Shown piece after piece: positions 2,617 through 39,076 of a stretch of 64,000 nucleotides of DNA. The translations under genes were made by a program, and so were the position numbers. The notes beneath the pieces were generated by a model. The model saw nothing but the letters and a program-made list of their open reading frames with translations, was not told where the DNA came from and did no database searches. Position 1 is the first letter of the stretch. Each line of letters begins with the position of its first letter. The stretch lies in the sequence record MG752970.1; one strand, written 5' to 3'.

Positions 2617-3180
2617 ATGACGTCCCAGGAACAATACGCAGAAGTGGTGCAGTGGATAGGGTTGAACGTTCGTAGATATGGTCAAAGGAACGTTCACGAT
2701 TCTTTGGTTGACCGGTATGGAAGATACCATATCGTAAAAGACGGAGTGGATTTCACAGGTACTGGTCTGCCGTTCAGTAAACCAAGTTTCCTAGAGATCA
2801 ACTCTAAGCATTTAACGTTTGAGAACTATGACTTTGAGAATTCACAGTACGGTGGAGTAGGTCAGATCAGTACTGCCTTCATGACTTTAGAATTCTGCAA
2901 AGGTGATCTGGAGAAGGTGGTTAGACAGACCGCTCCGATGAGAATCGATTTCTTGAACATTAGTGCTAAGTTTGGAGAATTTACTAATTTGGTTGCTGCT
3001 ACACAGGTGTCTGATCACGTGATCTTCAGAGTATCAAGACCTAATAGCAGTAGTTCCATATTAGAGATATCGACTATTACGAACGTGGCGATATTTAAAG
3101 GTAAGCAATCCTGCTACTTCACTGACGTATTTGATTTACAGAACATTTTAATAGATAACGGGTTTGAGGATTTGGTATGA
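2617..3180 (+). CDS. paralog family member P1 (no MKLxEI N-terminus)
   Basis: C-term DVFDLQNILIDNGFEDLV; core GLPFSKP..YDFENSQYG shared with P2-P5. Confidence 0.9.
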   Translation: MTSQEQYAEVVQWIGLNVRRYGQRNVHDSLVDRYGRYHIVKDGVDFTGTGLPFSKPSFLEINSKHLTFENYDFENSQYGGVGQISTAFMTLEFCKGDLEKVVRQTAPMRIDFLNISAKFGEFTNLVAATQVSDHVIFRVSRPNSSSSILEISTITNVAIFKGKQSCYFTDVFDLQNILIDNGFEDLV

Positions 3181-3758
3181 GGTTGAATGAAATTAAAGAT
3201 CAGACAGGATTTAAGACTATATCAGATTGGGTTAAACTGAATGCTAGTGAATCTACTGTACACGATGTTCTGGCTAATATTAAAGAATTGCGTTCCGGTT
3301 CATACTGCATCCAGATGAATCACTTGTTCCTAAATGGTAACGGTCAACCGTTCAGTAAACCAGACAATCTCATTATCAGAGCTCTTGAACATATAACATT
3401 TAGCAATTATGATTTCGAGAATTCTGATTATGGGTTTACTGGAACAATTAACGCATATTCGGTATCTCTCGAGTACGGTCCTAAGTGTGATTTGGTAAAG
3501 GTGTTCCAGCGGACTTCAAGTTTATCGTTTGACAAGATTTATGTCACTCTTAAGATGGGTGAGTTTACGAATTTAGTTCCAGCAACCGAGATGGTAGAGA
3601 ATGCGGTAATTACTGCAGCAGGTGGAGAACCTCTTCGTAAACTCTTCATAAGTACAAGAGGACAATTCGTTAATACTGGTGGTAAGAAACATGATTATAA
3701 AGATGCGTTCGATCTACAAGAGATTTTAATTAATAACGGGTTTGAGGATTTGGTATGA
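3177..3758 (+). CDS. paralog family member P2
   Basis: MRLNEI...DAFDLQEILINNGFEDLV; ATGA overlap. Confidence 0.9.
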   Translation: MRLNEIKDQTGFKTISDWVKLNASESTVHDVLANIKELRSGSYCIQMNHLFLNGNGQPFSKPDNLIIRALEHITFSNYDFENSDYGFTGTINAYSVSLEYGPKCDLVKVFQRTSSLSFDKIYVTLKMGEFTNLVPATEMVENAVITAAGGEPLRKLFISTRGQFVNTGGKKHDYKDAFDLQEILINNGFEDLV

Positions 3759-4348
3759 GGCTATCAGAAATAAAAGATAAGGACGCTGATCAGGCAATAG
3801 TTGATTGGGTCAGATCAAACCTCGATTACTATAATGCAAGTGCCATAGTTGATTCGATACCTAGAACGGGTGAGACGTTTAACCTGGCACTAGTTGATGT
3901 AATGCTTGATGGTAAAGGTCGACCTTTCAGCAAACCCGACAATCTTAAGATTACCGCTGATAGTATTACTCTTCTAGACTTTGATTTTGAGAATTCTGAT
4001 TATGGTAATGTTGGAGATATCAGTATCGATTACTTAATTCTAACATATGGAGTTCTGAAGCAAGGTCCTAAGTTTGATCTAGTAAAGGCGATTGAGAAGA
4101 CTCACAATGTGTCGCTGGATACCATTACGATAAATGTTAAACCTGGTGAGTTTAGTAATCTCATAGCCGCAACTGAGATATCAGATAGACTTAATATTAA
4201 TATCCGGCGCATTAAACCTGCCGGTCAGACGGTGAGTATTGATACAAGTAATTGGGTACTCTCTATAGGAAGTAAGAAATTTGATTACAAGGATCCTTTC
4301 GAACTGCAGGAGCTTTTGATTGACAACGGGTTTGAGGAATACGTATGA
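3755..4348 (+). CDS. paralog family member P3
   Basis: MRLSEI...DPFELQELLIDNGFEEYV; ATGA overlap. Confidence 0.9.
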   Translation: MRLSEIKDKDADQAIVDWVRSNLDYYNASAIVDSIPRTGETFNLALVDVMLDGKGRPFSKPDNLKITADSITLLDFDFENSDYGNVGDISIDYLILTYGVLKQGPKFDLVKAIEKTHNVSLDTITINVKPGEFSNLIAATEISDRLNINIRRIKPAGQTVSIDTSNWVLSIGSKKFDYKDPFELQELLIDNGFEEYV

Positions 4349-4929
4349 AGCTATCAGAAATTAAAGAAACTAATAATCCGATGTTTGCATGGATTACTAA
4401 GAACGTCAAAAGTCTGAAAATGCAGAACTTGATGCTGGACTATATTCAAGATATCAAACCCGAGGATCAACTTAAACAAGTAAGCATTCAGAATCTGACA
4501 CTAACCGGTAATGGTGAACCGTTCGAACCACCCCCATTTGACTTACACGTTGCGAATGAACTCATACTTAATAACTATGATTTCGAGAATTCTGATTATG
4601 GTAAACCGGGTACTATACAGGGCGCTCACATCATTTTAGAATATGGTCCTAAGTGCGATTTGGTAAAGGTGGTGCAGAAGATCGTGAACATGCAGTGCGT
4701 TACATTGGGAGTCATAGTTGAATCCGATGGATTTACGAATTTGATTCCTGCAACAGATATATCCTGGAGATTAAATCTATCAATCGTCGATTGGGCAACA
4801 CAGAAAAAGATAATTGAAATTCGTACTGAATCTAAAAAGATATTCATCAACGGTGAGCAGTTAGAATATTCGGATGTCTTTGATCTTCAGGACATTTTGA
4901 TTCAGAATGGATTTAAGGAGTATGTATGA
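4345..4929 (+). CDS. paralog family member P4
   Basis: MKLSEI...DVFDLQDILIQNGFKEYV. Confidence 0.9.
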   Translation: MKLSEIKETNNPMFAWITKNVKSLKMQNLMLDYIQDIKPEDQLKQVSIQNLTLTGNGEPFEPPPFDLHVANELILNNYDFENSDYGKPGTIQGAHIILEYGPKCDLVKVVQKIVNMQCVTLGVIVESDGFTNLIPATDISWRLNLSIVDWATQKKIIEIRTESKKIFINGEQLEYSDVFDLQDILIQNGFKEYV

Positions 4930-5483
4930 GGCTGAGTGAAATTCAAAGAGACGGTATTAAAGAATGGCTGAATAAGTATTTAGCCGACAATCGTATTGAT
5001 GATGTAACATCCATCGTGAAATCTATTGATGCAAATAATGGATTGTATATCAATCAATTGCTATTAGGAAGTAAAGGCAGTACTTTCGTTTCTCCTCCTT
5101 TTCAGATTCATGCAGACTATACTAAACTGTCTGATTACGATTTCGAGAATTCTACATATGCAAATATATCAACAAAAGATCTTGCTCTGGTAGGACGAAT
5201 GAATGATATAGAGAAGGTGGTAACCGGTGTAAAGAAATCTTTTAAAAGATTGGCTGACCTTCAGATTACTGCATTTTCTAATAATGCACGTAATGTAGTT
5301 TCTGCTATATCAATGGTTGACAAATTTGATATGTATGTGCAGATCATGGCTAATGATTATACTCTTTCCATTAACACATTTGATCAATCAATATATACTG
5401 ACGTAACGAATAGACAAACGTACGAAGATGTATTTGATCTACAGGACATTTTAATTAACATGGGATTTGAGGCACTGGTATGA
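4926..5483 (+). CDS. paralog family member P5
   Basis: MRLSEI...DVFDLQDILINMGFEALV. Confidence 0.9.
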   Translation: MRLSEIQRDGIKEWLNKYLADNRIDDVTSIVKSIDANNGLYINQLLLGSKGSTFVSPPFQIHADYTKLSDYDFENSTYANISTKDLALVGRMNDIEKVVTGVKKSFKRLADLQITAFSNNARNVVSAISMVDKFDMYVQIMANDYTLSINTFDQSIYTDVTNRQTYEDVFDLQDILINMGFEALV

Positions 5484-6064
5484 AGCTAACTGAAGTTTTA
5501 AGATTAACGAAGAGAGATGTTATTGATACCATGCAGGAGTATGGTATTAGTTTGGTAGGTAACAGGGCGGTTAGTGAAAGTGTTTTTGAGATCGATGCGT
5601 ATGATCAGGTCATCATGAATCCATCAGAGGCTGCGCTAGAGTTTAGGAAGAGCATTGCTAAACCTATTCCACTCGTATTTGCATATGCATCAAACATGAT
5701 ATTTAGAACCATTAAAGTAGCAGATTGGAGTTATCTAGGATCTCCTAATCAATCTTTAGACTGGTTCTTCGCAAATTGCTTGCTACCAGACTTCAATGAT
5801 ATGCCTAACTTTCCTAGTGTCGCGCTAGAAATTGTTGATGCACGATACCTCCAGCAACCTATTTCGGGTCTGTTTGATAATTCTCCAGTAGCGTCTTTAA
5901 GCTACATCCCTGACGATCGAAACAAGCACGTTAGTATCAGCAAGGGCGTTCATCAGAATAGTAACGACATTCTTATTATATGGAAGGGTGGAAGTAAGAC
6001 CGTATCGAGCACGTTTGAGCTACAGGACTGGTGCATCGATAATGGGTTTGAATTCTGGGCGTAA
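5480..6064 (+). CDS. paralog family member P6
   Basis: MKLTEV...STFELQDWCIDNGFEFWA. Confidence 0.9.
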   Translation: MKLTEVLRLTKRDVIDTMQEYGISLVGNRAVSESVFEIDAYDQVIMNPSEAALEFRKSIAKPIPLVFAYASNMIFRTIKVADWSYLGSPNQSLDWFFANCLLPDFNDMPNFPSVALEIVDARYLQQPISGLFDNSPVASLSYIPDDRNKHVSISKGVHQNSNDILIIWKGGSKTVSSTFELQDWCIDNGFEFWA

Positions 6065-6067
6065 TGC

Positions 6068-6640
6068 TTATACCAGGTTATCAAACCCATTTGTAATCAG
6101 CCAATCCTGAAGTTCGAATGTATCATCTAGAAAAGTTGTCTTTTGTTGGTATCTAACTTTAATCTTTCCAGGTGTGGATGAGGCTGTCTTATCCTTCCAG
6201 ACGGAAAGGAATGAAGTAGGACCATCCTCTAGCAAAAACTCTGTACTCTCAGAATCATTATCAAACATAGGGATAATGCTGTCCTTGAATCCTACATCTG
6301 GACTCATTGAGATCTGTATGTGTTTAAAAACCGGTATCTGAGCTATAGGCGGAATTTCGCAATTAATAAAGTACCATTCTTTTGCTTGAGTTGGTGATCC
6401 TACATCTGACCAGTTGCTAATGATTCTTCCGTTGATCTCTATAGAAAACAATCCATCAAATTCAAAAGGAAGTTTAATTGGCCCGGCTCCATACACTGAA
6501 GCGCTAACATGCAATGATTTAAAGACCACCTTATTGTTGACCACATCAAACGCGACTGGCATTCCAAACTCGATTGAGTTTTTGTCAATAAAGTCTTCAA
6601 CCTGTTTCTTTGTGAGTCCCTGTATCTCTTTAAGCTTCAT
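6068..6640 (-). CDS. paralog family member P7 (inverted)
   Basis: MKLKEI...DTFELQDWLITNGFDNLV; AGAAAGGAG RBS and TAAATA upstream on minus strand. Confidence 0.9.
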   Translation of the reverse strand: MKLKEIQGLTKKQVEDFIDKNSIEFGMPVAFDVVNNKVVFKSLHVSASVYGAGPIKLPFEFDGLFSIEINGRIISNWSDVGSPTQAKEWYFINCEIPPIAQIPVFKHIQISMSPDVGFKDSIIPMFDNDSESTEFLLEDGPTSFLSVWKDKTASSTPGKIKVRYQQKTTFLDDTFELQDWLITNGFDNLV

Positions 6641-6658
6641 TAGAATTCTCCTTTCTTA

Positions 6659-6696
6659 TATTTACGGGTTTCTACGGATAGCTTATAATGTAAATA
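6659..6696. promoter_or_regulatory. divergent pair of TAAATA boxes
   Basis: TATTTA 6659-6664 (serves P7) and TAAATA 6691-6696 (serves P8-P19). Confidence 0.6.
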
Positions 6697-6712
6697 GAAG
6701 AAAGGAATGAAC

Positions 6713-7309
6713 ATGAAGCTAAACGAAATATCTCCACTAGATGATGCTATATCCTGGGTTAATAAGCACATAGGTGCAAAAGCTCGGGTCGCCCGATCAA
6801 TGATTCAACAGCTGCGATCACTTTATATGAATTCAGAACCAGATAAAGTGATCGCAACGGACCACTTAAACCTGCAAGCTAAACAATTTCCCGATGGTTG
6901 GGTAAGTCCACCATTTAAGATTTCTGCCGAACAAGTCCATTTATATGGGTTTGACACCAAGGACTCGAGGTTTGACTGGATTCAGAGCTGCGATAGTCTA
7001 GTTATTCATGACTATGAAGAAGGTGAGGTTTCAGATATTCGTGTCGATGAAATAGCTAACATTCAGGGATTGAGTGGTTTCTCTGTTCTGGCTGATATTA
7101 ATCATTGTAAGAGAATCGTAAACATTTTCGATCTTATAGGTTCAGTGACGGTGCAGCTAAGAGTTAGTAAGAATAGAACCGATGATACCGATTTTGCCAT
7201 CTGGATCTACAACAACGATGCTAACATTCAGGGCAAGCGCGTTAACTTCAATTCCATCTTTGATCTACAAGAGATTCTGATTGATAATGGATTCGAGGAT
7301 CTAGTATGA
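6713..7309 (+). CDS. paralog family member P8
   Basis: MKLNEI (ATG 6713, AAAGGA RBS)...SIFDLQEILIDNGFEDLV. Confidence 0.9.
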   Translation: MKLNEISPLDDAISWVNKHIGAKARVARSMIQQLRSLYMNSEPDKVIATDHLNLQAKQFPDGWVSPPFKISAEQVHLYGFDTKDSRFDWIQSCDSLVIHDYEEGEVSDIRVDEIANIQGLSGFSVLADINHCKRIVNIFDLIGSVTVQLRVSKNRTDDTDFAIWIYNNDANIQGKRVNFNSIFDLQEILIDNGFEDLV

Positions 7310-7908
7310 AGCTAAACGAAATTGCAATGAGCGATGGTGAGATGATTGACTATCTCATTAAGAATCTCAAGTTTAAGGACGATTGGTACGACACGGAATG
7401 GAATGATGCGTCAGAGGTTTCAACCACACTAACTGTTAATAAGTATGGTGTCGATGTGGATGCAGCATACTGGCTAGAACCTAAGAGAGTAGTTGATATT
7501 GCATTTCCGATTGTAAACATGATTGGATGGACTGGTAAATGGAACATCATGAAGCAGTGCAAGGTTAATATGCCAGATGTATCGTCAGTGTATGTAACTG
7601 AGTTTAATGGTACTCCGGCTGATATCACCGCTTACTTTTCTCAGTTTCAGAAACTAGATGATGCCCGAGTCGTGATAAAGAAAGGAGTAAAAGGTGCGAT
7701 TAATCTGTTCAATGCTTTAACAGAATTGAATTCAAAAGATCCGATGTTTTACGTTACTCTTGAAAATGAAAAGGTGTCTATCAGTAAGAATAGAAACTCC
7801 GCCATCATAACTATATTTGATCTCGCAGAATATAAGACGTATCATGTAGATAGCATCTTTGATCTGCAAGACTGGCTGATAGATCATAATATGAAGGATC
7901 TAGTATGA
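7306..7908 (+). CDS. paralog family member P9
   Basis: MKLNEI...SIFDLQDWLIDHNMKDLV; core resembles P23. Confidence 0.9.
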   Translation: MKLNEIAMSDGEMIDYLIKNLKFKDDWYDTEWNDASEVSTTLTVNKYGVDVDAAYWLEPKRVVDIAFPIVNMIGWTGKWNIMKQCKVNMPDVSSVYVTEFNGTPADITAYFSQFQKLDDARVVIKKGVKGAINLFNALTELNSKDPMFYVTLENEKVSISKNRNSAIITIFDLAEYKTYHVDSIFDLQDWLIDHNMKDLV

Positions 7909-8483
7909 AGCTAAACGAAATAACAGACATCTACAATTGGGCAAGAACGTATAGTAAAAACGGAAGCACGAATTTGCACCTTGAGAATGGCAAAGTGTTG
8001 TTTATGGCCATGTACTTGAATGCTCCTACCTACGATAATACATTCGTACCTCCACCTATTGAGTGTCAGGTTGAAACTAACTGCAGAATTTTATTCTTTG
8101 ATGTTAGCACCATCACGTTAGACTGGCTTGATAGCTATCAAAATCTTACCATAGATGGCGATGGTGATTTCACCAACTTACTACCAGAAATTCGTAAGAG
8201 CGTTCAAAAGGTAAATCCAAATACGATAGTGATTAACACCCTTTTAACCAGCACCTTAAACATTCCAGAATTATGTAGCTTGCCGTGCAATGTTAGCGTG
8301 GCCATTTTCAGGAAAGTTGTCAATTCATCGTATGAAAATTCAGAATTCATCCTGTATACGAATAAAGGAAGCATTGAAATTATAGAAGATGTTGGTACAA
8401 GCAATGCCCGGGTTATAAAAAACTTAGATCAGTTTACTCTACAGGATTGGCTGATTGATAACGGTTACGAGAACTTCATATGA
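7905..8483 (+). CDS. paralog family member P10
   Basis: MKLNEI...DQFTLQDWLIDNGYENFI. Confidence 0.9.
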   Translation: MKLNEITDIYNWARTYSKNGSTNLHLENGKVLFMAMYLNAPTYDNTFVPPPIECQVETNCRILFFDVSTITLDWLDSYQNLTIDGDGDFTNLLPEIRKSVQKVNPNTIVINTLLTSTLNIPELCSLPCNVSVAIFRKVVNSSYENSEFILYTNKGSIEIIEDVGTSNARVIKNLDQFTLQDWLIDNGYENFI

Positions 8484-9049
8484 AACTTCGAGAGATAAAA
8501 GGATCAGTGGATCCAAGTTGGTTGAAATGGGCTAAAGCTAATACACAAAAAGCTAGATCAAATCTATTAGACATTATTGAGTACGAGGATGGAAGACCAT
8601 TCCTACATGTTGAGAACATGACGTTGAGAGGCAACAATCAGGCGTTCACTCCACCTCCCTTTCAAATCATAGTAGAAGAAACATTAGAGCTTAACAACTA
8701 TGATTTTGAGAATTCAGTGTATGGAAACATTAAAGCTAAGACTGTAGAAATGAATGGTGTAGAAGGCGATATGCTTAAGGCTGTAAAAGCCATTGAGACG
8801 ATTAAGCCTGAATACGTACTTATCTACAGTAAGCGCGGAACATTTAGCAACTTATTAGCCGCCGTCGATGGACAGAATATTGCTCAGTTAGAAATTGTTA
8901 TTACGCATGCAACACCACCATTAACACCAATTGCTTCTATATCAACGTGGGACAAAATGGTTTTGATAGGCAACAGCTACAAGGCATATTCTGACATCTT
9001 TGAGCTGCAACAGTTACTAGTGGATAATGGTCTTGAGGATATTGCATGA
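8480..9049 (+). CDS. paralog family member P11
   Basis: MKLREI...NYDFENSVYG...DIFELQQLLVDNGLEDIA. Confidence 0.9.
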   Translation: MKLREIKGSVDPSWLKWAKANTQKARSNLLDIIEYEDGRPFLHVENMTLRGNNQAFTPPPFQIIVEETLELNNYDFENSVYGNIKAKTVEMNGVEGDMLKAVKAIETIKPEYVLIYSKRGTFSNLLAAVDGQNIAQLEIVITHATPPLTPIASISTWDKMVLIGNSYKAYSDIFELQQLLVDNGLEDIA

Positions 9050-9684
9050 AGCTAAACGAGATTAAAGACAATAGTGAAATCGCAAACTGGATTAATAGGT
9101 TTGCGGGTGAAGAATCTCATACACTTGGCGCCAGCTTCTTAGATCGTGATGAGCTACTGAAGAAGATATCTCTTGACAGTGATGGTAAATATGTGCTACC
9201 GACCACGGTTAAAAACATTAAAGTAAGATGGTCCGGGAAATTTGAGGCGCCCCCGTTCATTCTGAACGGGGTGAATTGGTTGATCTTTTCTTCAAATGAT
9301 TGTGATACGGTAGATCTAGGGTTTGTAAAGAACGCTTGGGTTCTATCATTCATCGGAAATCTAGGAAACTTAAATCATTACGTAGGTGAGCTGGGTAAAC
9401 TTGAGACACCATTAGGATCGTCTCATAGGGTAAACTTCAAAGCAAATAAACCGTGCTCAGGATTAATTGAGACTCTGCACAATCTTCAGCGCACAAGAGT
9501 TCATTTTGACTACATTCCAATTCATCCGGATCTAGACTTAAAGCAACTGGGCGGTAGGGGATTCAAGCTTCTATGCGAACATAACGTATACACCTTCGGT
9601 TTTGCCGGTGAAGCTGTTAAATATGATAACCTATTCGATGTTCAGGATCGATTAGTGAATGACGGATTTGCGGAGTTTATATGA
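9046..9684 (+). CDS. paralog family member P12
   Basis: MKLNEI...NLFDVQDRLVNDGFAEFI. Confidence 0.9.
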   Translation: MKLNEIKDNSEIANWINRFAGEESHTLGASFLDRDELLKKISLDSDGKYVLPTTVKNIKVRWSGKFEAPPFILNGVNWLIFSSNDCDTVDLGFVKNAWVLSFIGNLGNLNHYVGELGKLETPLGSSHRVNFKANKPCSGLIETLHNLQRTRVHFDYIPIHPDLDLKQLGGRGFKLLCEHNVYTFGFAGEAVKYDNLFDVQDRLVNDGFAEFI

Positions 9685-10286
9685 AGCTGAATGAAATTAA
9701 AAAGGATATTATTAGAGAGTGTTATGACTGGTTTGAGTCATACGTTATATTAGGAGGTCTTTCTAGAGTTTACGAAAACTTTAAGGAAGATTTCTATGAC
9801 AATTTCTTCATGGCACCGGATGGAGTCCCAGTACTAAGGTTTGATACTAAGCAGATCAACATTGAATATTCTGGAAAGGAGTGGACTCAGCCACCGTTTA
9901 GAATCAGAGCAGCCTCCATACGTATTGCTAATTTAGATTGTCGTAATATGGATTTAAGCTTCATCGATCCTATCATAGATGACATGCAATTTAGAATGCA
10001 TAATTGTGTTGTTGGTAATTGTCAAAAGTTTATTGATGCAGAAGCCAGCGTAGAACAATTTGATATCTCAACATCGGATATCAGCAACGTTGTAGAGATG
10101 CTGCGAGTTTGCGAGAATGTTAGAATCTATTTGAATCTTGGCAAATCGAAAGTACTTGTTATTGAGAGCGTTGAAAGAAGCAAATTTTCTCTTGTAGATA
10201 GTATCGATAAGAAGCAGTATGATTTCACTGATATTTTTGACGTTCAAACATGGCTCATAGAAAATGGGTATGAGGACATCGTATGA
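9681..10286 (+). CDS. paralog family member P13
   Basis: MKLNEI...DIFDVQTWLIENGYEDIV. Confidence 0.9.
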   Translation: MKLNEIKKDIIRECYDWFESYVILGGLSRVYENFKEDFYDNFFMAPDGVPVLRFDTKQINIEYSGKEWTQPPFRIRAASIRIANLDCRNMDLSFIDPIIDDMQFRMHNCVVGNCQKFIDAEASVEQFDISTSDISNVVEMLRVCENVRIYLNLGKSKVLVIESVERSKFSLVDSIDKKQYDFTDIFDVQTWLIENGYEDIV

Positions 10287-10900
10287 AGTTAAATGAGGTG
10301 GTCGACACACGAACAAAGGTATACCAGTGGTTGGTAAAGTATGATAATTCGCACCACAAGCCAAGCAAAGAGGATCTCAAGATAGAAAGTTGGATCCTCT
10401 CAACAAATGAACTTTGGCTGCGTCCAGTAAAGAATTCAATAGACAAACGGTTCTACGCGCCGCCAGACGTTCTGTTTGACGTCAACCAAATTCACATAGT
10501 CGGTTTTGATGTATCAACCATTAAGTTGAATTGGATCCTACATACCAGAAGTTTAATTTTGGCTGGCGTTGGTGATTGGACAAAATCAATGCCGGGGATT
10601 ATCGAAAGTGTTGGAGGATCCGGTAACAAAATATTGCAGATTCAAACTAGCACTGACAGCAAAATGAATCTGCTTGATTTGTTCAATATTAATCCGACAG
10701 CATATGCGTCCGTCTCATTCTATCATAATGGATATGGTCAAGTTGGTAGCAAGCTAGCATTTTACGTAAATAGCAATAAGCATGGTGGATTTGTGGTGAC
10801 CTTTATGGATGATAATCAGGACGGGTTTGATGAAGAAGTGAACGACCAATTCGAACTACAAGACGTGCTGATACAAAATGGATACGAGAGGTTCACGTGA
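10283..10900 (+). CDS. paralog family member P14
   Basis: MKLNEV...DQFELQDVLIQNGYERFT. Confidence 0.9.
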   Translation: MKLNEVVDTRTKVYQWLVKYDNSHHKPSKEDLKIESWILSTNELWLRPVKNSIDKRFYAPPDVLFDVNQIHIVGFDVSTIKLNWILHTRSLILAGVGDWTKSMPGIIESVGGSGNKILQIQTSTDSKMNLLDLFNINPTAYASVSFYHNGYGQVGSKLAFYVNSNKHGGFVVTFMDDNQDGFDEEVNDQFELQDVLIQNGYERFT

Positions 10901-11505
10901 AACTTAAAGAAGTAGCAATTAATTTTGATGAAATGTCCAAGTGGGAAGAATGGGTTAAGCATAACCTACAAAACGTGACGGGCCAGGGAAACATTTGGAC
11001 AACCATCAAGAATTTCATTTCACATAATACTCTTGATTTGCGTTCCGCTCCTGACATTGCTAGAGCTCTAGTTGGAACCGGTCAGCCATTTATTTCTCCA
11101 CCCGGACAATTTATTAAAGGATCGATGGAGTTCATCAATTATGATTTCGCCAACACCGCATCAATAGATAATCTAGTGAGCAGCAGAATTTTTCTGTATT
11201 CACAAAATGGGTATGGTGATCTTCCGACCTTATTACGAAAATTTAAATCCGTTGAAGCTTTGCGTAAGCTTACAGCAAATATAGAATACGGCAAAATCGT
11301 GAATTTGACAGAGGCTGCTGAGGAATTTGCTGATGGAAAAATCGAAATTGTAATTGATGTAGTGCATCGATCCGGTGCTGTCATTTTTGGTATCAATCTA
11401 CAAAAGAAATTTGTAAATACAACCAATGGAAATAACTTTCAATATGCTGATTCATTTGAGCTACAAGATTGGTTGATTAGCAACGACTTTAAGGATCTTG
11501 TATGA
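10897..11505 (+). CDS. paralog family member P15
   Basis: GTG start, (M)KLKEV...DSFELQDWLISNDFKDLV; GTGA overlap. Confidence 0.9.
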   Translation: MKLKEVAINFDEMSKWEEWVKHNLQNVTGQGNIWTTIKNFISHNTLDLRSAPDIARALVGTGQPFISPPGQFIKGSMEFINYDFANTASIDNLVSSRIFLYSQNGYGDLPTLLRKFKSVEALRKLTANIEYGKIVNLTEAAEEFADGKIEIVIDVVHRSGAVIFGINLQKKFVNTTNGNNFQYADSFELQDWLISNDFKDLV

Positions 11506-28702: not shown

Positions 28703-28708
28703 ACAACG

Positions 28709-30632: not shown

Positions 30633-31330
30633 ACTAATACATCCGGATATTGTTTAATAAATTGCTTTTTAAGCCAATTGAAATCGTTAATCTTGACCAT
30701 TTTCTTGAGATCATTTCGGTATAGGCCCCCATATTCAGCTCCAAATTCGGCTCCTTCTAAAACATATTTGCCAAATTCTTCAGTACCTCCGATATTTCTC
30801 CAAATTGTTAATCGCTCTTCTGTTTCAGAATCAACAGACCCAGAGATAACTCGTGAGGAGAGCTTTGCACATTCTCTGAATGCAGCTCTCCATGCTCTAA
30901 ATGGATCAGAATTAAATCGGTTGATTGACGCAACTTGATCATGGAAATGATTTAATCCTTGAACCGATGTCGTATAATCCGGAAGCGTTTTATCAAGCTT
31001 TAACACCAAGCTTTTTGTCATAAGCTTTACACCACCATTTCCATACTCAAGTCCATTAACGGAGTTGCGACTTTTCCACACGTGAATCCATTTGTTATAA
31101 TGAGGAGGAATTGGGTCGTCAAAATTAAAGGTGTCAAGCACTTCGTTATCGCCATCAACCACGTAAAAGAATTCGGTATGAGCGGTATCTGCTACCGCTT
31201 CATGCGCATTTTGAATTCCCTTTACCCCTTTAACTCGCATTGCCCATGGACAAATTTCGGTTAATTTTCTGAAATTTGCATCCGCGTTTGGTTCATCATA
31301 GGAAAGTTGAATTACATCTACCAGGCTCAT
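30629..31330 (-). CDS. GT-A-like glycosyltransferase (paralog of 32735..33688)
   Basis: DVIQLSYDEP...RVKGVKGI.NAH...VVDGD (DxD), GNGGVKL, AWRAAFRE. Confidence 0.65.
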   Translation of the reverse strand: MSLVDVIQLSYDEPNADANFRKLTEICPWAMRVKGVKGIQNAHEAVADTAHTEFFYVVDGDNEVLDTFNFDDPIPPHYNKWIHVWKSRNSVNGLEYGNGGVKLMTKSLVLKLDKTLPDYTTSVQGLNHFHDQVASINRFNSDPFRAWRAAFRECAKLSSRVISGSVDSETEERLTIWRNIGGTEEFGKYVLEGAEFGAEYGGLYRNDLKKMVKINDFNWLKKQFIKQYPDVLV

Positions 31331-32760
31331 CTGAATTCTAACTCACACTGTCTAATAAAATCTGAAAGTTCTGGAAACACTTCAGCCACATTCAAACCTC
31401 TGTTCTTCTCGTATTGTTGATAATAGAGAACAAAGTTTTGACGGTTCAAAATCACATTTGAATTTTCTGTCATCATGAATTCGCAGAGCCGCTGGACCTG
31501 ATCTATCTCTTCCAAATAAAAGCGCCCGGCTTTATGATGAGAATTTGTTCTATTACGGTCAGTAACATACTTGGTCCACTCTGCCGCATATTTATGCTTG
31601 AGATCATCTGTAAGATTGTTTATGTTAAGGAACTCTGGCCATCTAACATATGCAATCATCATAGGCGTTCTATTATGTGAATCCTCTTCATTGTATGTGC
31701 ACCGTAGATTGTAGATAAAATCTAAGAAATCCATAAATGATGGGGCCGACAACAGATTCGTGGTGACCATGAAACTTAATCTAACCGCACTTGGTGTATT
31801 CTCAAGAACATATTTGCAATTTTCTTGGAATTGTCCGTAGTCCATCCCAAATCTAATAAACTCTGCTTGCTCGCCGGATGCTTCGCAACTGGTATAAATT
31901 TGGAATTCTTTTATTTTACCTTGCAGCTTATTAGCGTAATCTACAAGCTTCTGAATTAACTTCTGAGGCACGCATAAGTTGGTATTAATCGCTATCGTTA
32001 GATCATCTCTGGGGTGCTCTAGAACATACTCAAGCACCTTCCATGTATGCTTGGACAGTAGCGGCTCGCCACCCGTAATTCTGAAAGTGTCAAGAGTTGG
32101 ATACAGTTCTGGCCACCAATTCCAAAATGCCTCCACATATGGATTGTAATCATCCTTATGAATTGGAATTCGTTTCGTTTGACGTGAATAATTTAGGTCA
32201 TACATTGTATAATTGTTCATTAGTTTGTATGGACCATGATGTTCAATTTCTTCCATCCAACGAGACGAAACTTCTGGAGAACAATACGTACATTTCAGGT
32301 TGCACGTTGAATCAAATGCCACCTCCATATAAGTTGGATTGATGTTTTCACCCAACTTAGATTTTAATACCACATCCAGATTTGGCCATGCCCAATTGTC
32401 TGCCGACTTGTAAGTACGATCACTTATGAAGTCCTTTCCTAAATCCTCAATGTTCCAACAATATCCACACTCACGTGGTCTTTCACCATTTAGCATCTGC
32501 TCACGCGCTTCTATTTTAGTAGCGGTGTTATGTATTCCAGTTGGATTTAATAAATCTTCGTCTGTTATTTTATGAGGAGATGGGTGGTGACATGAATGAG
32601 TATATCCATTGTATAGTGTAATAGTAGACTGCAGCCACTTGGCTAAACACATTGAGGGAGAAACCTCATTAAGAGATTTCCCTATTTCTTTTAGACGTAT
32701 AACCCGTTTCTGATTGTAATTAACGGGATCTAGCTTACCTTCGTCCATTGATGACCTCAA
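31327..32760 (-). CDS. radical SAM protein with Cys-rich N-terminal (SPASM/twitch-like) region
   Basis: CNLKCTYC (CxxxCxxC), ITGGEPLL, INTNL; extra CHH and CGYC motifs. Confidence 0.85.
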   Translation of the reverse strand: MRSSMDEGKLDPVNYNQKRVIRLKEIGKSLNEVSPSMCLAKWLQSTITLYNGYTHSCHHPSPHKITDEDLLNPTGIHNTATKIEAREQMLNGERPRECGYCWNIEDLGKDFISDRTYKSADNWAWPNLDVVLKSKLGENINPTYMEVAFDSTCNLKCTYCSPEVSSRWMEEIEHHGPYKLMNNYTMYDLNYSRQTKRIPIHKDDYNPYVEAFWNWWPELYPTLDTFRITGGEPLLSKHTWKVLEYVLEHPRDDLTIAINTNLCVPQKLIQKLVDYANKLQGKIKEFQIYTSCEASGEQAEFIRFGMDYGQFQENCKYVLENTPSAVRLSFMVTTNLLSAPSFMDFLDFIYNLRCTYNEEDSHNRTPMMIAYVRWPEFLNINNLTDDLKHKYAAEWTKYVTDRNRTNSHHKAGRFYLEEIDQVQRLCEFMMTENSNVILNRQNFVLYYQQYEKNRGLNVAEVFPELSDFIRQCELEFR

Positions 32761-33688
32761 TTTCTGTCACTAGAGGATTCAGTGATCTAACTGGGGTATC
32801 AATAATCCTCTTAAACATTTCGCTCTGATGAGCATCAAAATATGGCACCCAAATTCCGGTTTTTAATTGGATTTCATCACCATATTCTACAATAAGGTCA
32901 TACAGATCTTCACTGTATCCATCTTTAGTCAGTTCATTAAATTTCTTTGTTTTCCAAAATTTAGTAAACCAATCATACGAACTAATATTTGCAAGGTCGA
33001 ATTCACCAGAGAGCGTCATCACCATACCCATACGCGCACCAAGAATTGACCATAATCCATTCTCAACATCGGCTCCTATCATAAGCCATGTTAGAAGGCG
33101 TTTGAAATTTTTGGCATGCAGTCGTTCTTCCAATTGTTGTGGATCTACAAGATTTCCATCATGTAGAGTCATCTTAACCCCTTCACGAAATGCCGCTCTA
33201 AATGCCTGATATGGAGAACCGTTGGTTTTGGTAGTTGAGTAAACATTATTCATTTGAACATATTTGCTATCCCAACAAAAATCTAGCTTATACTTTGACT
33301 CTTCATTCTCAACGTCCTTATGCTCGTGTGTGCGCATATTGTTGACGAAATCTTTAGTCCATAATTTTAGACCACCATTACCATAGATAAGACCATTCAC
33401 GTAATTTACTGATGCCCAACTAAATGTGCAATCAGATAAATGATCTGGGATGTCCATTTCAATATCGGTGAACTCATCATGCACGATAGTATCTCCATCG
33501 ACAGTGATGAATCTATCCGTCTGAGAAAGTTCTGCACACTTCTTATGTGCAGCGTCAAATCCCTTTACGCCATGAACGCGCTGCGCCCATGGAAATTTAG
33601 TAAGAAGATTTGCCCAATTTTTTTCGCGTTCAGGTTCATCGAAGCTGATGTAGAACACGTCGTATTCGGTAATATGTGTTTTAGCCAT
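32735..33688 (-). CDS. GT-A-like glycosyltransferase
   Basis: DVFYISFDEP...RVHGVKGFDAAH...TVDGD, GNGGLKLW, AFRAAFRE. Confidence 0.65.
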   Translation of the reverse strand: MAKTHITEYDVFYISFDEPEREKNWANLLTKFPWAQRVHGVKGFDAAHKKCAELSQTDRFITVDGDTIVHDEFTDIEMDIPDHLSDCTFSWASVNYVNGLIYGNGGLKLWTKDFVNNMRTHEHKDVENEESKYKLDFCWDSKYVQMNNVYSTTKTNGSPYQAFRAAFREGVKMTLHDGNLVDPQQLEERLHAKNFKRLLTWLMIGADVENGLWSILGARMGMVMTLSGEFDLANISSYDWFTKFWKTKKFNELTKDGYSEDLYDLIVEYGDEIQLKTGIWVPYFDAHQSEMFKRIIDTPVRSLNPLVTEIEVINGRR

Positions 33689-34235
33689 TGTCTATTTCTA
33701 AGCTGTAGCTGTCGAAAAATTTTCGAGTAAGGATTGAGAAATTGGATTTGTCAAAGTTGAAATCATCTTCAAGTGATTCATCTTGAACAAGTTTTTGTGC
33801 GTCGAGCACGTATGTATGAATTAACTTATTCGGTTCCTCATATTCTGTAACAAACACCATAAGTTGCGATGAATGCTTGTCGAGAAACGTATCCATGATA
33901 GACATGGCATAGTCCTTAACATCGGGATCCAATTTAAATGTGATCTTATTTCCAGTTATTTTAATTTCCAACTGAGCATCATCAACTTTCTTATCAACCT
34001 TTAGAAAAGTTACATTATGATTCCACTTGGTTTTTGCCTTCTTAACAATTCTATATTCACCTGGATTTGCCTGGAAAATTACGTACTCATGATCAAACAC
34101 GTGGGGTGTGTGAATGAATGTATTTCCTAATTCTTCGGTAAGTTCTATGTATGCTAGAGTGGGATCAGAAGGTTTAACAGGAGTAATACGAGAGAATGAA
34201 TTTCTTTCGGTATTTATAATGCCATAGTATCTCAT
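33681..34235 (-). CDS. hypothetical protein in glycosylation block
   Basis: 184-aa ORF overlapping both neighbours. Confidence 0.8.
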   Translation of the reverse strand: MRYYGIINTERNSFSRITPVKPSDPTLAYIELTEELGNTFIHTPHVFDHEYVIFQANPGEYRIVKKAKTKWNHNVTFLKVDKKVDDAQLEIKITGNKITFKLDPDVKDYAMSIMDTFLDKHSSQLMVFVTEYEEPNKLIHTYVLDAQKLVQDESLEDDFNFDKSNFSILTRKFFDSYSLEIDNG

Positions 34236-35080
34236 CTCTTCACCTTTCTTTCAAGCGTTTTGATGATGTCATCGGTTAGAAATGATTTGTCGTGATAGTG
34301 AACCGGATAATTTTGCTTAAAGTTACCAATGTAGAGTTCACAATCATTGTTGAAGAAAACTGGAACATGCTCAACCCATTCTTCAGGAATAACAGTCTCT
34401 TCAGAATTCCAATTCTGAAGTTCGGTTTTCATGTGCACAAATTTCGGATGAAAGATTGATTTCTTTATTGATTCTATTTCCATTACTTTTGATGCAACAC
34501 CGAAAATAACATCAGTGCTTAATTCAGCTGGACGAGTTTTGGCATTAAGAAACATCTCAGACATAAGCTTCCAGTTCTTAAACCACATCTCAATATATTT
34601 GAAGAAATTGAAAGTCCATTCCGTCTTCTTAAAATAGAAGAAAGCGGAATATGAATTGTGAAGAAGATTGTCAGTGAAAACTTTTCGATAATAATCGTTG
34701 GTTACCAATTCGTGTCTGAAGTTTACAACATCCTTACACATCACCGCATCTTGACGACTTAGCTCATCCCACCATTTAGTGATATCAACCGTGAATAACA
34801 TGTCAGCATCCAATTTTATTGTCTCATCGTATGGCGACATGTAGATGCTCTTCCATTCATTGTGCAGCTTCCAGGTTCTCCCGTCTGCATCGTCTCCCCA
34901 TGGAATTTCGATTATCTTATCAAATGCCCATGCATATTCTTCAGGAACCTTATATCCTTCCGTGATCCCAATTGAAAGTTTGTCGTATTTTGATTGAGAT
35001 GCTTTTAGACTCAGAGCCAACGCATATGCCATTCGGACATATTGATCTCCCTGCGCAAACGTAAAGAATCCTCTACTCAT
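34232..35080 (-). CDS. glycosyltransferase-like (GT8/mannosyltransferase-type DxD)
   Basis: SPYDETIKLDADMLF; C-terminal HYH; paralog of 35077..35946. Confidence 0.65.
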   Translation of the reverse strand: MSRGFFTFAQGDQYVRMAYALALSLKASQSKYDKLSIGITEGYKVPEEYAWAFDKIIEIPWGDDADGRTWKLHNEWKSIYMSPYDETIKLDADMLFTVDITKWWDELSRQDAVMCKDVVNFRHELVTNDYYRKVFTDNLLHNSYSAFFYFKKTEWTFNFFKYIEMWFKNWKLMSEMFLNAKTRPAELSTDVIFGVASKVMEIESIKKSIFHPKFVHMKTELQNWNSEETVIPEEWVEHVPVFFNNDCELYIGNFKQNYPVHYHDKSFLTDDIIKTLERKVKR

Positions 35081-35946
35081 GCGTATAGCTCCATGATTTT
35101 TTCATATTGCTGAGAAATTGAAAATTTATTCATGACATGTACATTTGTGTTTCTCAACCTTACCAAATTTGGTCCTTGATTTTGCTGAGAATAAAACATC
35201 ATCTTCACTGAATCCTTTTCAACTTCAAGCAGTGAATCCCTGTCGATTGCTGTTACTATCGTCGGAGTAGGAAGAGATTTTACTGAATTTGATTCCATAA
35301 AATTAGACAGAATATGAATAGCAATTGAAAATGCAAAATCATTTCTGTACATTGATTTCGAAAATCCGTAAATGAGCTTGTAGTACCACCAATTTTGACG
35401 GATATAATTCACTAAATCAAATAGAATTCTTGTCTGATCTGTCTTCTTAAAATAGATCAGCGTTGCCCAGTACATTCTAATACCCGTTTGATTCAATCGA
35501 AGATCACTACCGGTTAACCGGCAGAAGTCCAATGAGCACGCAGATTTATTAATCAGCAAATCCTCATTTGTACCCCAAGCACTGTTTAGAGAATCATTTT
35601 GAATCAAATAGTCTGAATCCACCACAATCGTTTCGTCAAATGGTGACAAATTGTATGCATCAAATCGGTTTAGATTGTTAAAGTTGGCGACATGCGTTAT
35701 GTCTGTTCCATCTCTATAGACACGTGAATTCTCTAATGGTTTATTTTCGGTCAGAATGATATGATCAAAAGATTTTTCAATCTGATTTCTAATATCAGGT
35801 TGCTCATTTAAACTCGCTTCATCTGTCACCAAAGCAGCAGAAATGCCACCCATGAAATGCTTTGCCATAACTGCAGAGCACGTAGCAATTTTGGTATATG
35901 CTAACTTGCCATTGTTGTGGGCGAAATACAGCAGACCTTTACTCAT
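35077..35946 (-). CDS. glycosyltransferase-like (GT8/mannosyltransferase-type DxD)
   Basis: SPFDETIVVDSDYLI, RNDFAFSIA, HVMNK. Confidence 0.65.
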   Translation of the reverse strand: MSKGLLYFAHNNGKLAYTKIATCSAVMAKHFMGGISAALVTDEASLNEQPDIRNQIEKSFDHIILTENKPLENSRVYRDGTDITHVANFNNLNRFDAYNLSPFDETIVVDSDYLIQNDSLNSAWGTNEDLLINKSACSLDFCRLTGSDLRLNQTGIRMYWATLIYFKKTDQTRILFDLVNYIRQNWWYYKLIYGFSKSMYRNDFAFSIAIHILSNFMESNSVKSLPTPTIVTAIDRDSLLEVEKDSVKMMFYSQQNQGPNLVRLRNTNVHVMNKFSISQQYEKIMELYA

Positions 35947-36310
35947 TGTCTATTAGCTTCAGTGTTTGTCTTGCTCGACGAATTTTTGAATACTCTACGA
36001 AATACGCATTCATAGAGTCATGGTATTTGGTGGTAATTGTCTTAAGAAATTCTTTTGGATCATCTATAAGAATAGGATTTTCATTTAGATCTATTAGATA
36101 GAAAGATGCCTTCTTACTTCTAACATGAAAATCCGTAAACATAATCAGTTCAGGTGTGATGTCGAAAGATCCCCCATTTATAGCAATGGTTAAATTTTCT
36201 TTCAGCTTATGATGAGCCGCATCTTTCTGATTTTTGGAATGAAATTTGAACTTGGAAAAGTCGAGGGCCGCCTGCAACTTCTCATCAACGAGAACGGTTT
36301 TGTCGGTCAT
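35939..36310 (-). CDS. hypothetical protein, first gene of glycosylation operon
   Basis: 123-aa ORF; GGAG RBS; TAAATA box 36372-36377. Confidence 0.8.
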   Translation of the reverse strand: MTDKTVLVDEKLQAALDFSKFKFHSKNQKDAAHHKLKENLTIAINGGSFDITPELIMFTDFHVRSKKASFYLIDLNENPILIDDPKEFLKTITTKYHDSMNAYFVEYSKIRRARQTLKLIDNE

Positions 36311-36383
36311 TAGATTGTAAACTCCGAAGGGAATTGGTTGCTAGACGAATGCTAGCAACCATGAACTTACTTATTTACGATAT

Positions 36384-37553
36384 TTACATCGAGCCAGCTT
36401 GCGTGGCCGTTGGATATGGAATCTCTGGATTATTCATGTAAATCGGTGCTACCTTAACCAAAGTTGCTTGAGATTTCAAAGTACCTTCAACTGATCCACC
36501 ATATGCAGATCCTGAGTTATCAGTGAATGTCACCAAGAATCTAATCTGGGTTCCACTTCCTTCAGATCTAACATCAACGGTGAATGCCATTGCCGCACTC
36601 GTCCACGAGTAGATTCTCTGATATGATGTCGTTAGATCATAGTATCCAACTGGAGAACCCGTAACTCCCGCGGAGTTAGATGTTGCGTGGCGTTGGAATA
36701 GCAATGTTCCGATGCTTGACAGTTGATTTGCCCATACTACATCATGCGAGTCAACAGGATTGGACAAAGAGAAATTGAATTTAATTTGTCCCTGTGTGTT
36801 CCAATAGGCACGTGCAGAATTAATATCCGGATACGTGAACAGTATTTCCTGGGTTATAGTACCTGTCCAGGCAGTTGTTCTTACTCGTGTAGTAGTAGAA
36901 TCTGAGAATGACTCACGAGTGCTGGTGTTTATGTTGTTGCAGTTTGTTACCACCAAGTTTGCCATTGCAGCGAGCGCGGTATATTTGTTACTTAGTGCCC
37001 ATAGACCAACGAAACCTGGATTTTCAGATTGATATAAGAAATCTAGATTTAATAGCTGAGTGTCAAACGTTGTTCCCTGATGTCCACAAATATTCTGCAG
37101 CGCGTTTGTCATGATAGCCCAATCAGATGCTACAGCATGGCGTCCAACAACTTGCGGTATAGCAACCTGGTTATAACCACGCGAATCGCTTCCATACGGA
37201 TACGGAGTCGTGTAGATGGAATTAATTATGGTAGCAAACTGATTATATTCGCTAGCATCAGCCCAATATACCTGACCTCCCAATGGAACCCATTTAGTAC
37301 CATCGTACAGATAAAGTTGCTTCGTGTTGTAATTGTAGTAAACCTGACCAGCAGTAGGATTTGCTGGTGGATTATAATCCGCAAAGTGTTCCATTAGGTG
37401 CAACAAGTTCTCTTGTAGCTGTTGACCCCAATTGAATCTACCTCTTCCGGTGATTACCAGAGTGGTAGTGGTTATGTCTTGCGAATTTGGTTGAACTTGA
37501 AATGGTGATTTTACAGCACTGTTAGTCCAGTGCATTAAATAGGTGCCTGCCAT
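36384..37553 (-). CDS. virion structural protein (tail/baseplate associated)
   Basis: GQQLQENLLHLMEHFA and GQVYYNYNTKQLYLYDGTKW motifs typical of phage tail proteins; AAGGAG RBS before MAGTYL. Confidence 0.65.
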   Translation of the reverse strand: MAGTYLMHWTNSAVKSPFQVQPNSQDITTTTLVITGRGRFNWGQQLQENLLHLMEHFADYNPPANPTAGQVYYNYNTKQLYLYDGTKWVPLGGQVYWADASEYNQFATIINSIYTTPYPYGSDSRGYNQVAIPQVVGRHAVASDWAIMTNALQNICGHQGTTFDTQLLNLDFLYQSENPGFVGLWALSNKYTALAAMANLVVTNCNNINTSTRESFSDSTTTRVRTTAWTGTITQEILFTYPDINSARAYWNTQGQIKFNFSLSNPVDSHDVVWANQLSSIGTLLFQRHATSNSAGVTGSPVGYYDLTTSYQRIYSWTSAAMAFTVDVRSEGSGTQIRFLVTFTDNSGSAYGGSVEGTLKSQATLVKVAPIYMNNPEIPYPTATQAGSM

Positions 37554-37584
37554 ATTTTCTCCTTCGCGCCGGCTCACAATAGGC

Positions 37585-37617
37585 AAAGGCTCCCTGCCGG
37601 TGAAAGTGGGAGCCTTT
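37585..37617 (-). terminator. intrinsic terminator
   Basis: AAAGGCTCCC...GGGAGCCTTT after tail tube gene. Confidence 0.6.
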
Positions 37618-37630
37618 TAGGTCTAAAATA

Positions 37631-38212
37631 TTAGTTTGCTACGTTACCGCCAAGAGCAGTACCAAGAGCATTCTTGTTATTAACTTCGCGTGCGTGGTCG
37701 AAACGGATAGTCAGTTGAATTGTAACTGCACCGGAATCTTGATAGTCCAGATCTCCGCGGTCAACGGCTTGCAGCCAGCAACCTTCGAGGATCCATTCTT
37801 CTAGAACGGTTTCATTACCATCAAGCATTTCCAATCTTGCACCAAACTTATAAGCTGACGCAGTTGGAGCGGTGTTCATCCATGGACCATCAGCTCCGAT
37901 CAGTTTTTGTTGGCGTTCTTGCTGTTCACCAATAACGGCGGCAGCCAAACCAGTAACATCATCTTCAACTGAAACGTTTAGAGGATCCCACGTATACTTA
38001 CCAGCAACATAAGCGGTAGTTGTATAACGGTGGATAGGAACTTCTTCAAATGACAGATTTGGTCTTGAAGTTGTAACGACCTGCATCGACAAGTCTGCAG
38101 TATTAGCTCCCGAAGCCATGTTCAGGAACGTGAGTCTCCACTTATTGCGATGCTTTGGGTGTAGATAACCTGTACCTACACCAGGAATTCCCATTTGACT
38201 GAGCGTGGACAT
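37631..38212 (-). CDS. gp19: tail tube protein (T4 gp19-like)
   Basis: PKHRNKWRL..RPNLSFEEV..YVAGKYTWDPL..EDD..W.LEGCW..LDY..IRFDHA; next to sheath. Confidence 0.85.
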   Translation of the reverse strand: MSTLSQMGIPGVGTGYLHPKHRNKWRLTFLNMASGANTADLSMQVVTTSRPNLSFEEVPIHRYTTTAYVAGKYTWDPLNVSVEDDVTGLAAAVIGEQQERQQKLIGADGPWMNTAPTASAYKFGARLEMLDGNETVLEEWILEGCWLQAVDRGDLDYQDSGAVTIQLTIRFDHAREVNNKNALGTALGGNVAN

Positions 38213-38281
38213 GTTTAAGAGTCTCCATAAAAGCTTTTACGATAATCTATTTATCGTTTATATGGAGCAAAACTATTGGGA

Positions 38282-39076
38282 TTACATTACCTCTTTCTTC
38301 AATATTTCTTCCACAGCTTCATAGAGTTTAGGAAGATTAAAGCTACCAATTTCATCCGCGCTGTAATACAAGCTCAGGAATGAAGACAAATCTACACGTA
38401 GATATGGTCTTTCGGCCGATATCATGAGCTCACAGTTACCCGGAATATGCTGAAGCGATCCAAAATTCTCAAAATCGTATTTCTCAAATTCCAAAGTCTT
38501 CATAAATTTGTATGCTTCGTATAGGAACTGATCAACGTCCGACTCATCTATTCCAGCATTCTTACAATCCCGCAGAAATTCATTTTTATCAAACTTTAGA
38601 GGTTCGATATCGTTCATTAACTTGATGCATCTATCCCAAGCAACAATACGCTTATCATTTCTGTCGAATACCATCTTATTAAATCTACCCACAGGGTTGA
38701 TCTCATACATATCCCTGTTCTTGGGTGAAGCTATAAGCCATGAATCTTCAGGAAGAAAAATCATGTTTAATCTTCCATACATTCCTATTTTTCCTGCTCC
38801 CTTTTGCGCAAATAAGCAGTTATTTCTGAAATGTTTAACACCAAATTCGTGCTCAGCAAATAGATTAAAGAAATTAGTTTCAGCGAATGTTGACGTTCTG
38901 GGTTTTCGATCTTTACGAATTACTTCGAAACTGGATACGGTGCTGTAATCATTTACACCGCGAAACCACGGCATGCCATTTGTTTTCTGAAGAAATGGTT
39001 TGAATTGACGAATTCGATCGAACAATTTCTTCTTTGCATCTTCTGGTACATCTTCGTAAAGATCTTTAAATTTCAT
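38282..39076 (-). CDS. hypothetical late protein, possible ART-like fold
   Basis: MKFKDLYE N-term; WFRG..RKDRKP..LFA..YG..IF; TAAATA box 39105-39110. Confidence 0.7.
   Translation of the reverse strand: MKFKDLYEDVPEDAKKKLFDRIRQFKPFLQKTNGMPWFRGVNDYSTVSSFEVIRKDRKPRTSTFAETNFFNLFAEHEFGVKHFRNNCLFAQKGAGKIGMYGRLNMIFLPEDSWLIASPKNRDMYEINPVGRFNKMVFDRNDKRIVAWDRCIKLMNDIEPLKFDKNEFLRDCKNAGIDESDVDQFLYEAYKFMKTLEFEKYDFENFGSLQHIPGNCELMISAERPYLRVDLSSFLSLYYSADEIGSFNLPKLYEAVEEILKKEVM

Follow-up and report, generated by a model that had tools for sequence, protein, structure and literature searches.

What does a six-residue motif, MKLxEI, do at the start of most members of a large and otherwise divergent protein family in the phage RsoM2USA? 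The question is raised by a 64,000-nucleotide stretch of the phage genome, referred to below as the window (MG752970.1, record positions 186001-250000; a record position equals the window position plus 186000), which matches that record at 99.9% identity and holds 35 genes of this family. RsoM2USA is a jumbo myovirus of 343.8 kb with T4/RaK2-like head genes and an unusually wide host range that covers three Ralstonia species (PMC8504454). The favoured answer, held tentatively and at somewhat less than even probability, is that MKLxEI is an exposed short form of the T4-type capsid-targeting or propeptide signal. Cleavage exactly after Glu5, which a preliminary description of the window had proposed together with routing into the prohead, appears doubtful.

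Family and tag analysis

A new gene call of the genome returns 486 genes, equal to the annotated number, and open reading frame (ORF) numbers are given as in the RsoM2USA paper, where they are identical to the GenBank locus tags. The family has 62 members among these genes, or 63 counting the divergent ORF89 (~13% of genes), and takes up ~9% of the RsoM2USA DNA; its hidden Markov model (HMM) matches 57 places in the genome. The 35 window genes, which encode proteins of ~190-210 amino acids (aa) each, are arranged in tandem arrays between positions 2617 and 28702, with ATGA overlaps between neighbours at most array junctions. Pairwise identity between the window paralogs is 13-30%, and only two short blocks are conserved, namely the N-terminal six residues and a C-terminal motif with the alignment consensus ..F-[ED]-L-Q-D-W-L-I-x-N-G-F-E-x-L-V. 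Counted through its Gly/Asn, the latter stops exactly 5 residues short of the C-terminus in most members. The region between the two blocks is hypervariable and resembles leucine-rich repeat (LRR) sequence.

A word-indexed protein search gave 4 matches, and an exhaustive HMM search was used instead to collect relatives. It returned 96 among 1.8 billion representative proteins, more than half of them from outside RsoM2USA and nearly all with the MKLxEI start and the same C-terminal motif. A soil metagenomic contig of 15.6 kb carries a syntenic array whose orthologs are 29-72% identical and keep both motifs. Among 50,697 phage records searched with tblastn, the family is essentially confined to RsoM2USA, and it was not found in phage XacN1; huge uncultured phages and some Vibrio phages show similarity to the LRR portion only, the Vibrio protein being without both terminal motifs.

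After over-extended ORF calls are reset to the MKL start (6713, 17762, 18412, 19717, 22247 and 26829; 10897 starts with GTG), the exact start M-[KR]-[LM]-x-[ED]-[IV] is present in 31 of the 35 window genes, as in the MRLNEI encoded by codons 1-6 at 3177-3194 on the plus strand. This is far beyond chance and bears out the earlier statement that most paralogs carry L-x-E inside M-K-L-x-E-I. The reset starts are backed by a promoter-like motif that overlaps or abuts the longer annotated starts and by the ATGA overlap that is regained, and the GenBank annotation itself has the MKL start for three of the reset genes. Genome-wide, the tag stands at residue 1 in ~42 family genes. The four window members that lack it are 2617 and, on the minus strand, 13898-14485, 14482-15069 and 15066-15695.

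A uniform gene start could also be conserved at the level of nucleic acid or translation, with the gene junction serving as a cassette boundary that recombination between tandem copies keeps uniform, or with selection favouring translational coupling and a start that is A-rich and unstructured. Most junctions are indeed ATGA, and the GAGGA codons within ..FED.. lie 7-9 nt ahead of the next ATG and double as its Shine-Dalgarno sequence, as in the C-terminal motif at 3704-3758 on the plus strand (..AFDLQEILINNGFEDLV, then stop). Lys as second codon generally favours initiation as well. This explanation is nevertheless highly improbable and is largely refuted by the codons of L3, x4, E5 and I6, which vary freely at synonymous sites among copies (five Leu codons for L3, GAA/GAG for E5, ATA/ATT for I6), so that selection acts on the peptide and not on a DNA cassette or RNA element. 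It is further opposed by the retention of the tag in array-first and solitary genes with no upstream paralog (6068-6640 on the minus strand, 6713, 16536, 26829 and 27932), by the retention of the C-terminal motif in the last genes of arrays, and by the presence of both motifs in distant metagenomic homologs.

Long tag, virion proteins and tag exchange

The capsid targeting sequence (CTS) of T4 is MKTYQEFIAE (bioRxiv 10.1101/2021.01.19.427310). A similar long tag is found in RsoM2USA, where the pattern M-x(0-3)-[FY]-[KQ]-x-[FYW] describes 15 N-termini as compared with 9 matches at ~100,000 internal positions, and a stricter pattern ending in L-x-E describes 10 N-termini and 5 internal sites. 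A CCA-adding enzyme among the 15 was set aside as a chance match. The long tag is present on ~14 proteins of at least five unrelated kinds, with starts such as MKTFKQFLSE, MQTFKQFLSE and MTTFKEYLTE, and the residue after its Glu is mostly small or polar (S, A, G, T or D; Met in two). MKTFKQFLSE matches the T4 sequence at M1, K2, T3, the aromatic residue 4, F7, the aliphatic residue 8 and E10. In both phages, a ~10-residue N-terminal tag ending in (I/L)-x-E stands on unrelated or hypervariable proteins in the presence of an S77 protease.

Ten bands of RsoM2USA virions have been identified with LC-MS/MS (liquid chromatography followed by tandem mass spectrometry) as ORFs 38, 86, 89, 132, 257, 356, 359, 361, 383 and 438 (PMC8504454). 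Three of these ten, ORF89, ORF132 and ORF438, carry the long tag, as against ~3% of all genes; ~0.3 tagged virion proteins would be expected by chance (p ~0.004, or ~0.04 without ORF438, by our own Poisson estimate). The N-terminus of ORF89 is MKTFKQFLSE and that of ORF132 is MKTFKQFLNTLME followed by Ala (MKTFKQFL..LME, then A). ORF438, read from its second Met, begins MLTFKQYAQPILTE followed by Gly (MLTFKQY..LTE, then G), and this Met is the likelier start because the annotated one has a TAAATA motif just 6 nt ahead of it. ORF89 belongs to the MKLxEI family as a divergent member (jackhmmer E 3.9e-4), with the C-terminal motif VFKCQEELIDMGYEKLAEM and family neighbours ORF88 and ORF90, so one member of the family is a detected virion protein.

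Long and short tags are found in exchange for one another. The adjacent paralogs ORF88, ORF89 and ORF90 begin MKLHEI, MKTFKQFLSE and MSFKTFLES, respectively; in the ORF274-284 array, MKLxEI stands alongside MRFKKWLSE and MSFKQWLKE; and the neighbours ORF403, ORF404 and ORF405 begin MTFKAFLQE, MTTFKEYLTE and MKLEDLFE. Alignments with the ORF132 and ORF438 homologs of other phages start only at residue 11-14, directly past the tag, and the PA5oct ortholog of ORF438 starts MNIAEI while the Atu_ph07 ortholog of ORF132 starts MQYTDLIE followed by Ala. Since the two kinds of tag replace each other on orthologs as well as on adjacent paralogs, MKLxEI would have the job of the long tag, and this exchange is the strongest argument for that equivalence. 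A start of the form M-[KR]-[LIV]-x-E-[ILVM] is also present on three proteins outside the family, where 0.22 are expected (p=0.0015), and all three are TAAATA-led.

As a separate observation in PA5oct, an 81-aa protein that begins MRLDEIQSK (record 152875-153120) is annotated as a virion protein by electrospray ionization tandem mass spectrometry (ESI-MS/MS); it is one instance of a short-tag protein detected in the particles of another jumbo phage with an S77 protease.

Prohead protease and promoter-like motif

ORF379 is a Peptidase_S77 protein (PF03420, E 4.8e-24, 85 bits against a cut-off of 27). Its frame extends upstream to a GTG at record position 259073 (record 259073-259705), which makes the annotation ~35 codons too short, and the full-length protein is colinear with T4 gp21, ..QQILIEEL.. 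paralleling ..PQLLIETW... In T4, gp23 loses 65 residues to gp21 and is cut after ..FLTE, before Ala, and FL-x-E recurs in the RsoM2USA long tags. The earlier claim that gp21 cleaves after (L/I)-x-E agrees with the preference of the T4 enzyme for I/L-x-E (PMC12991175), and T4 gp24 loses its first 10 residues, MAKINELLRE (PMC9958956). This propeptide and the N-terminus of gp67 (MEGLIEAI) resemble MKLNEI in pattern. T4 gp23, gp24 and gp67, however, are components of the shell and core, whereas the RsoM2USA carriers form a large accessory family with a putative site 5 residues in. That site is accessible in one structural model (predicted local distance difference test, pLDDT, 59) and helical in another.

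The most enriched word upstream of RsoM2USA genes is (A/G/T)TAAATA, with 14-fold enrichment for ATAAATA, and TAAATA lies 15-35 nt ahead of 96 starts genome-wide. Genes led by it include those for tail sheath, baseplate, portal and neck, the MS-verified ORF356, every long-tag operon and the heads of the arrays. By likeness to T4 TATAAATA, TAAATA is probably a late promoter. In the window it is found on the plus strand at the array head at 16514-16519 and at 2596-2601, 6691-6696, 22218-22223, 26803-26808 and 27904-27909, and on the minus strand at 6659-6664, 29936-29941 and 39105-39110. The enrichment behind TAAATA that the preliminary description suggested looking for is present but modest, 25.6% of TAAATA-led genes having [LI]xE within 14 residues as against 13.2% of others (Fisher p=0.01).

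Capsid targeting would proceed as follows. The tag, as an amphipathic helix, would carry its protein to the prohead's scaffolding core, where the S77 (gp21-like) protease might trim it after the Glu. The proteins would remain in the head, to be delivered into the cell together with the DNA as a diverse collection of binders. Targeting and cleavage of the short tag, and what the proteins bind, are inferences; the motif, its add-on character, the long-tag class with its link to MS-detected virion proteins, the tag exchange between paralogs, the protease family and the shared promoter-like motif are observed.

Position of the tag in the fold

The main competing explanation is that the motif is no more than the beginning of the first helix of the family, capping the structure for folding or stability with no role in targeting, and that it looks like T4 propeptides because of how amphipathic N-terminal helices are generally composed. 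In the AlphaFold model of 7905-8480 (pLDDT 93, predicted template modelling score 0.88), a helix at residues 3-16 opens the chain, followed by a beta-rich core and, at the C-terminus, a helix-loop-helix. In this short-linker copy the tag lies within the confident fold (pLDDT ~88-89) as part of that single helix and continues directly into the portion with a conserved Trp, whose helix face L3 and I6 share; this speaks for a structural role and against a free targeting tag. The equal conservation of the C-terminal motif suggests family-wide structural constraints in the same way, and no paralog with MKLxEI has been reported from virions.

Other evidence makes a purely structural role fairly unlikely. 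The distance from Met1 to the conserved Trp ranges from 12 to 31 residues across the family, so that linkers between tag and Trp helix differ in length by as much as 19 residues, and for the long-linker copy 12670-13302 AlphaFold gives residues 1-10 a mean pLDDT of 59, with all other block means at or above 83 and an overall mean of 88. The four tagless window copies retain the Trp helix and everything downstream, and the tagless state of the minus-strand trio is stable, its orthologs in the metagenomic relative being tagless too. A structural cap also does not account for paralogs that exchange the tag for a T4-CTS-like tag of unrelated length, or for the same tags on unrelated proteins. Because the linker is variable, the tag is poorly ordered in one model and a tagless sub-lineage retains the fold, MKLxEI behaves as an add-on at a free N-terminus and not as part of the fold core.

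The two conserved termini could instead be handles by which the proteins dock to some shared partner that is not the prohead core, with the family acting as adaptors. The variable LRR-like face would then bind host proteins and the constant handle, chiefly the C-terminal helix-loop-helix, would recruit a phage or host machine, in the manner of F-box-LRR or poxvirus ankyrin-PRANC families; alternatively, the handles would join the paralogs together. In line with this, most members have the C-terminal motif fixed 5 residues from the C-terminus, the central region between the motifs is LRR-like and hypervariable, and the C-terminal motif stands alone on mini-proteins just upstream of the window. 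There are seven or eight of these, of 75-80 aa (record 183205-185708), with the motif (..LFDLQDWIVTN..) and no LRR-like body, and the C-terminal motif thus behaves as a separate module. A partner is not known, however, and the sharing of the N-terminal tag with unrelated virion proteins goes unexplained, which leaves this explanation improbable. A homodimer prediction scored 0.00 and gives no evidence either way.

The fold itself has no close counterpart in the collections searched. No family member tested reached a Pfam, PHROG or PADLOC-type family, Foldseek searches of the family model against the PDB and AFDB clusters gave no fold match (template modelling score <=0.39), and the ESM Atlas held no convincing neighbour. 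The family profile gives weak, repeated matches to LRR proteins (carriers of LRR_4, LRR_5 and LRR_EndoS; E 5e-6 to 6e-4), and the ORF88-90 subfamily shows L-x-S-L-x-G-x-P repeats. The likeness to LRR proteins consists of weak profile matches over multiple stretches and of these repeats, whereas the terminal motifs are specific to this family.

Evidence against targeting and comparison with known systems

Several observations weigh against capsid targeting by MKLxEI. None of the ten reported virion bands is a paralog with the short tag, although only ten bands were analysed; a virion band of ~21 kDa has been assigned to ORF356 (PMC8504454). With PA5oct as a stand-in, MS detects 3 of the 7 proteins checked that have tag-like N-termini, against a background of 20%, a difference short of significance, and the ORF438 ortholog with the MNIAEI start was undetected there. 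Compared with the CTS, MKLxEI has no aromatic residues and retains just M, K and L-x-E. Its length of 5-6 residues is, to our knowledge, below that of any targeting sequence that has been tested. In nearly all copies its Glu is followed by Ile or Val, as compared with Ala or Ser at the T4 sites of gp23, gp24 and the CTS. The family proteins are acidic (median isoelectric point 4.9), whereas T4 internal proteins are basic, and the equally conserved C-terminal motif is unexplained by a targeting model. It is because of the bands, the PA5oct data, the missing aromatics, the Ile/Val, the acidity and the C-terminal motif that capsid targeting is placed a little below even probability.

The wider occurrence of L-x-E near N-termini must also be counted on this side. 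The preliminary description cited three unrelated proteins, starting at 24053 (MNFKSFLNINKLFE), 29907 (MKVDDILQE) and 39076 (MKFKDLYE), as echoes of the motif. Their N-termini read as described and lie in or behind TAAATA-led units, but L-x-E is there at base rate: it occurs within 14 residues in 4 of 41 non-family genes of the window and, genome-wide, in 10.6% of 424 non-family proteins as compared with 6.4% of internal windows of the same size. Because early L-x-E is this common among non-family proteins, the three cases represent no excess, and early L-x-E as such is a base-rate feature.

The three proteins fare differently when they are assigned to tag classes. ORF337 (24053-25225, plus strand; 390 aa), a non-family protein with a weak KwaB-like match below cut-off, belongs to the long-tag class (MNFKSFLN...KLFE, then A). 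ORF346 (29128-29907, minus strand; 259 aa), with TAAATA at 29936-29941, belongs to no tag class, and its early L-x-E is indistinguishable from chance. ORF357 (38282-39076, minus strand; 264 aa) carries a near variant of the long tag and belongs to the paralog family phrog_11975/12810, in which ORF255 begins MNQTFKQFLTE, ORF403 MTFKAFLQE, ORF404 MTTFKEYLTE and ORF405 MKLEDLFE.

The T4 internal proteins are the textbook example of proteins that are injected with phage DNA to disarm host defences, and there are only a handful of them. They are few, small and basic, whereas the RsoM2USA array proteins are acidic, LRR-like, ~22 kDa in size and present in ~60 copies, and would be targeted by a tag, M-K-L-x-E-I, that has no aromatics, is about half the length of the T4 CTS and has Ile after the Glu. 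Giant phages of the phiKZ type (SPN3US, phiKZ) reportedly also have large sets of paralogous head proteins, packaged or ejected, which the prohead protease processes after a Glu motif; their protease lineage and motif (S/A/G-x-E) differ, their propeptides are long and the proteins themselves are unrelated. Packaging of those proteins rests on proteomics, while that of the MKLxEI family is proposed here from its tag.

An extended form of the targeting proposal, in which 45-55 divergent LRR-like binders are loaded via a minimal CTS of 5-6 residues and injected with the DNA against host defences, is on the unlikely side. If true, the family would far exceed every internal-protein repertoire known and would show by natural example that M-K-L-x-E-I suffices for head targeting. 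If the favoured explanation of capsid targeting holds, head-assembly signals would be tied to host-range breadth through tagged, rapidly diversifying binders in the particle, and jumbo-phage heads could be loaded with cargo by means of a natural packaging tag that is very short. An N-terminal MxTFKxFLxE or MKLxEI behind TAAATA would then predict packaged proteins in T4-related giant phages, most genes of which are unannotated. Even should the short tag fail, genes of this phage group can still be annotated by the long T4-like tag, which stands on MS-verified virion proteins.

Other features of the window and genome

Array block 1 of the family (2617-13895, plus strand) consists of 19 tandem genes encoding ~190-210 aa each, with 6068-6640 on the minus strand, and all but 2617 start MKLxEI or MRLxEI. 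It is followed by the tagless trio (13898-15695, minus strand), which has the conserved Trp helix and the C-terminal motif. Block 2 (16536-21595, plus strand) holds eight tagged genes, at 16536, 17129, 17762, 18412, 19103, 19717, 20325 and 20990, and block 3 (22247-24056, plus strand) holds those at 22247, 22876 and 23454, the last two with altered C-terminal ends. Two solitary genes on the plus strand complete the set: 26829-27419, with the tag MKLSEI and an upstream ATAAATA at 26802-26808, and the longer 27932-28702 (256 aa), with the tag MKLYEI and ATAAATA at 27903-27909.

The phrog_11975/12810 family comprises five tagged members (38282-39076; record 165072-165797 and 271358-274009) with F/Y-R-G and K-R-N-x-S conserved. 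The idea that ORF357 and its paralogs are ADP-ribosyltransferases, which arose from the F/Y-R-G by eye, was unsupported by Pfam and PDB profile searches. Pfam and PHROG scans of the MKLxEI paralogs and the three cited proteins returned no family except phrog_11975 for the protein at 39076 and sub-threshold KwaB and SSB matches. The ORF254-257 operon (record 164332-166771) is led by the virion protein ORF257 and includes three tag-bearing genes. Among these, ORF254 begins MTTFKEYLLE and is P-loop kinase-like (AAA_33/Zeta_toxin, E ~1e-6), which makes it a candidate packaged enzyme.

Positions 1-2000 of the window have a G+C content of 49%, as compared with 37-43% across the remaining window, and Pfam has no match for the ORFs there (138-953 and 1227-1784, both on the minus strand, and others); acquisition of these 2 kb may be recent. 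At 29949-40089 on the minus strand, a sugar-modification cluster lies among the tail genes behind TAAATA motifs. It includes a weak radical-SAM match below cut-off at 31327-32745 and an NAD-dependent epimerase/dehydratase at 39112-40089 (E 1e-52).

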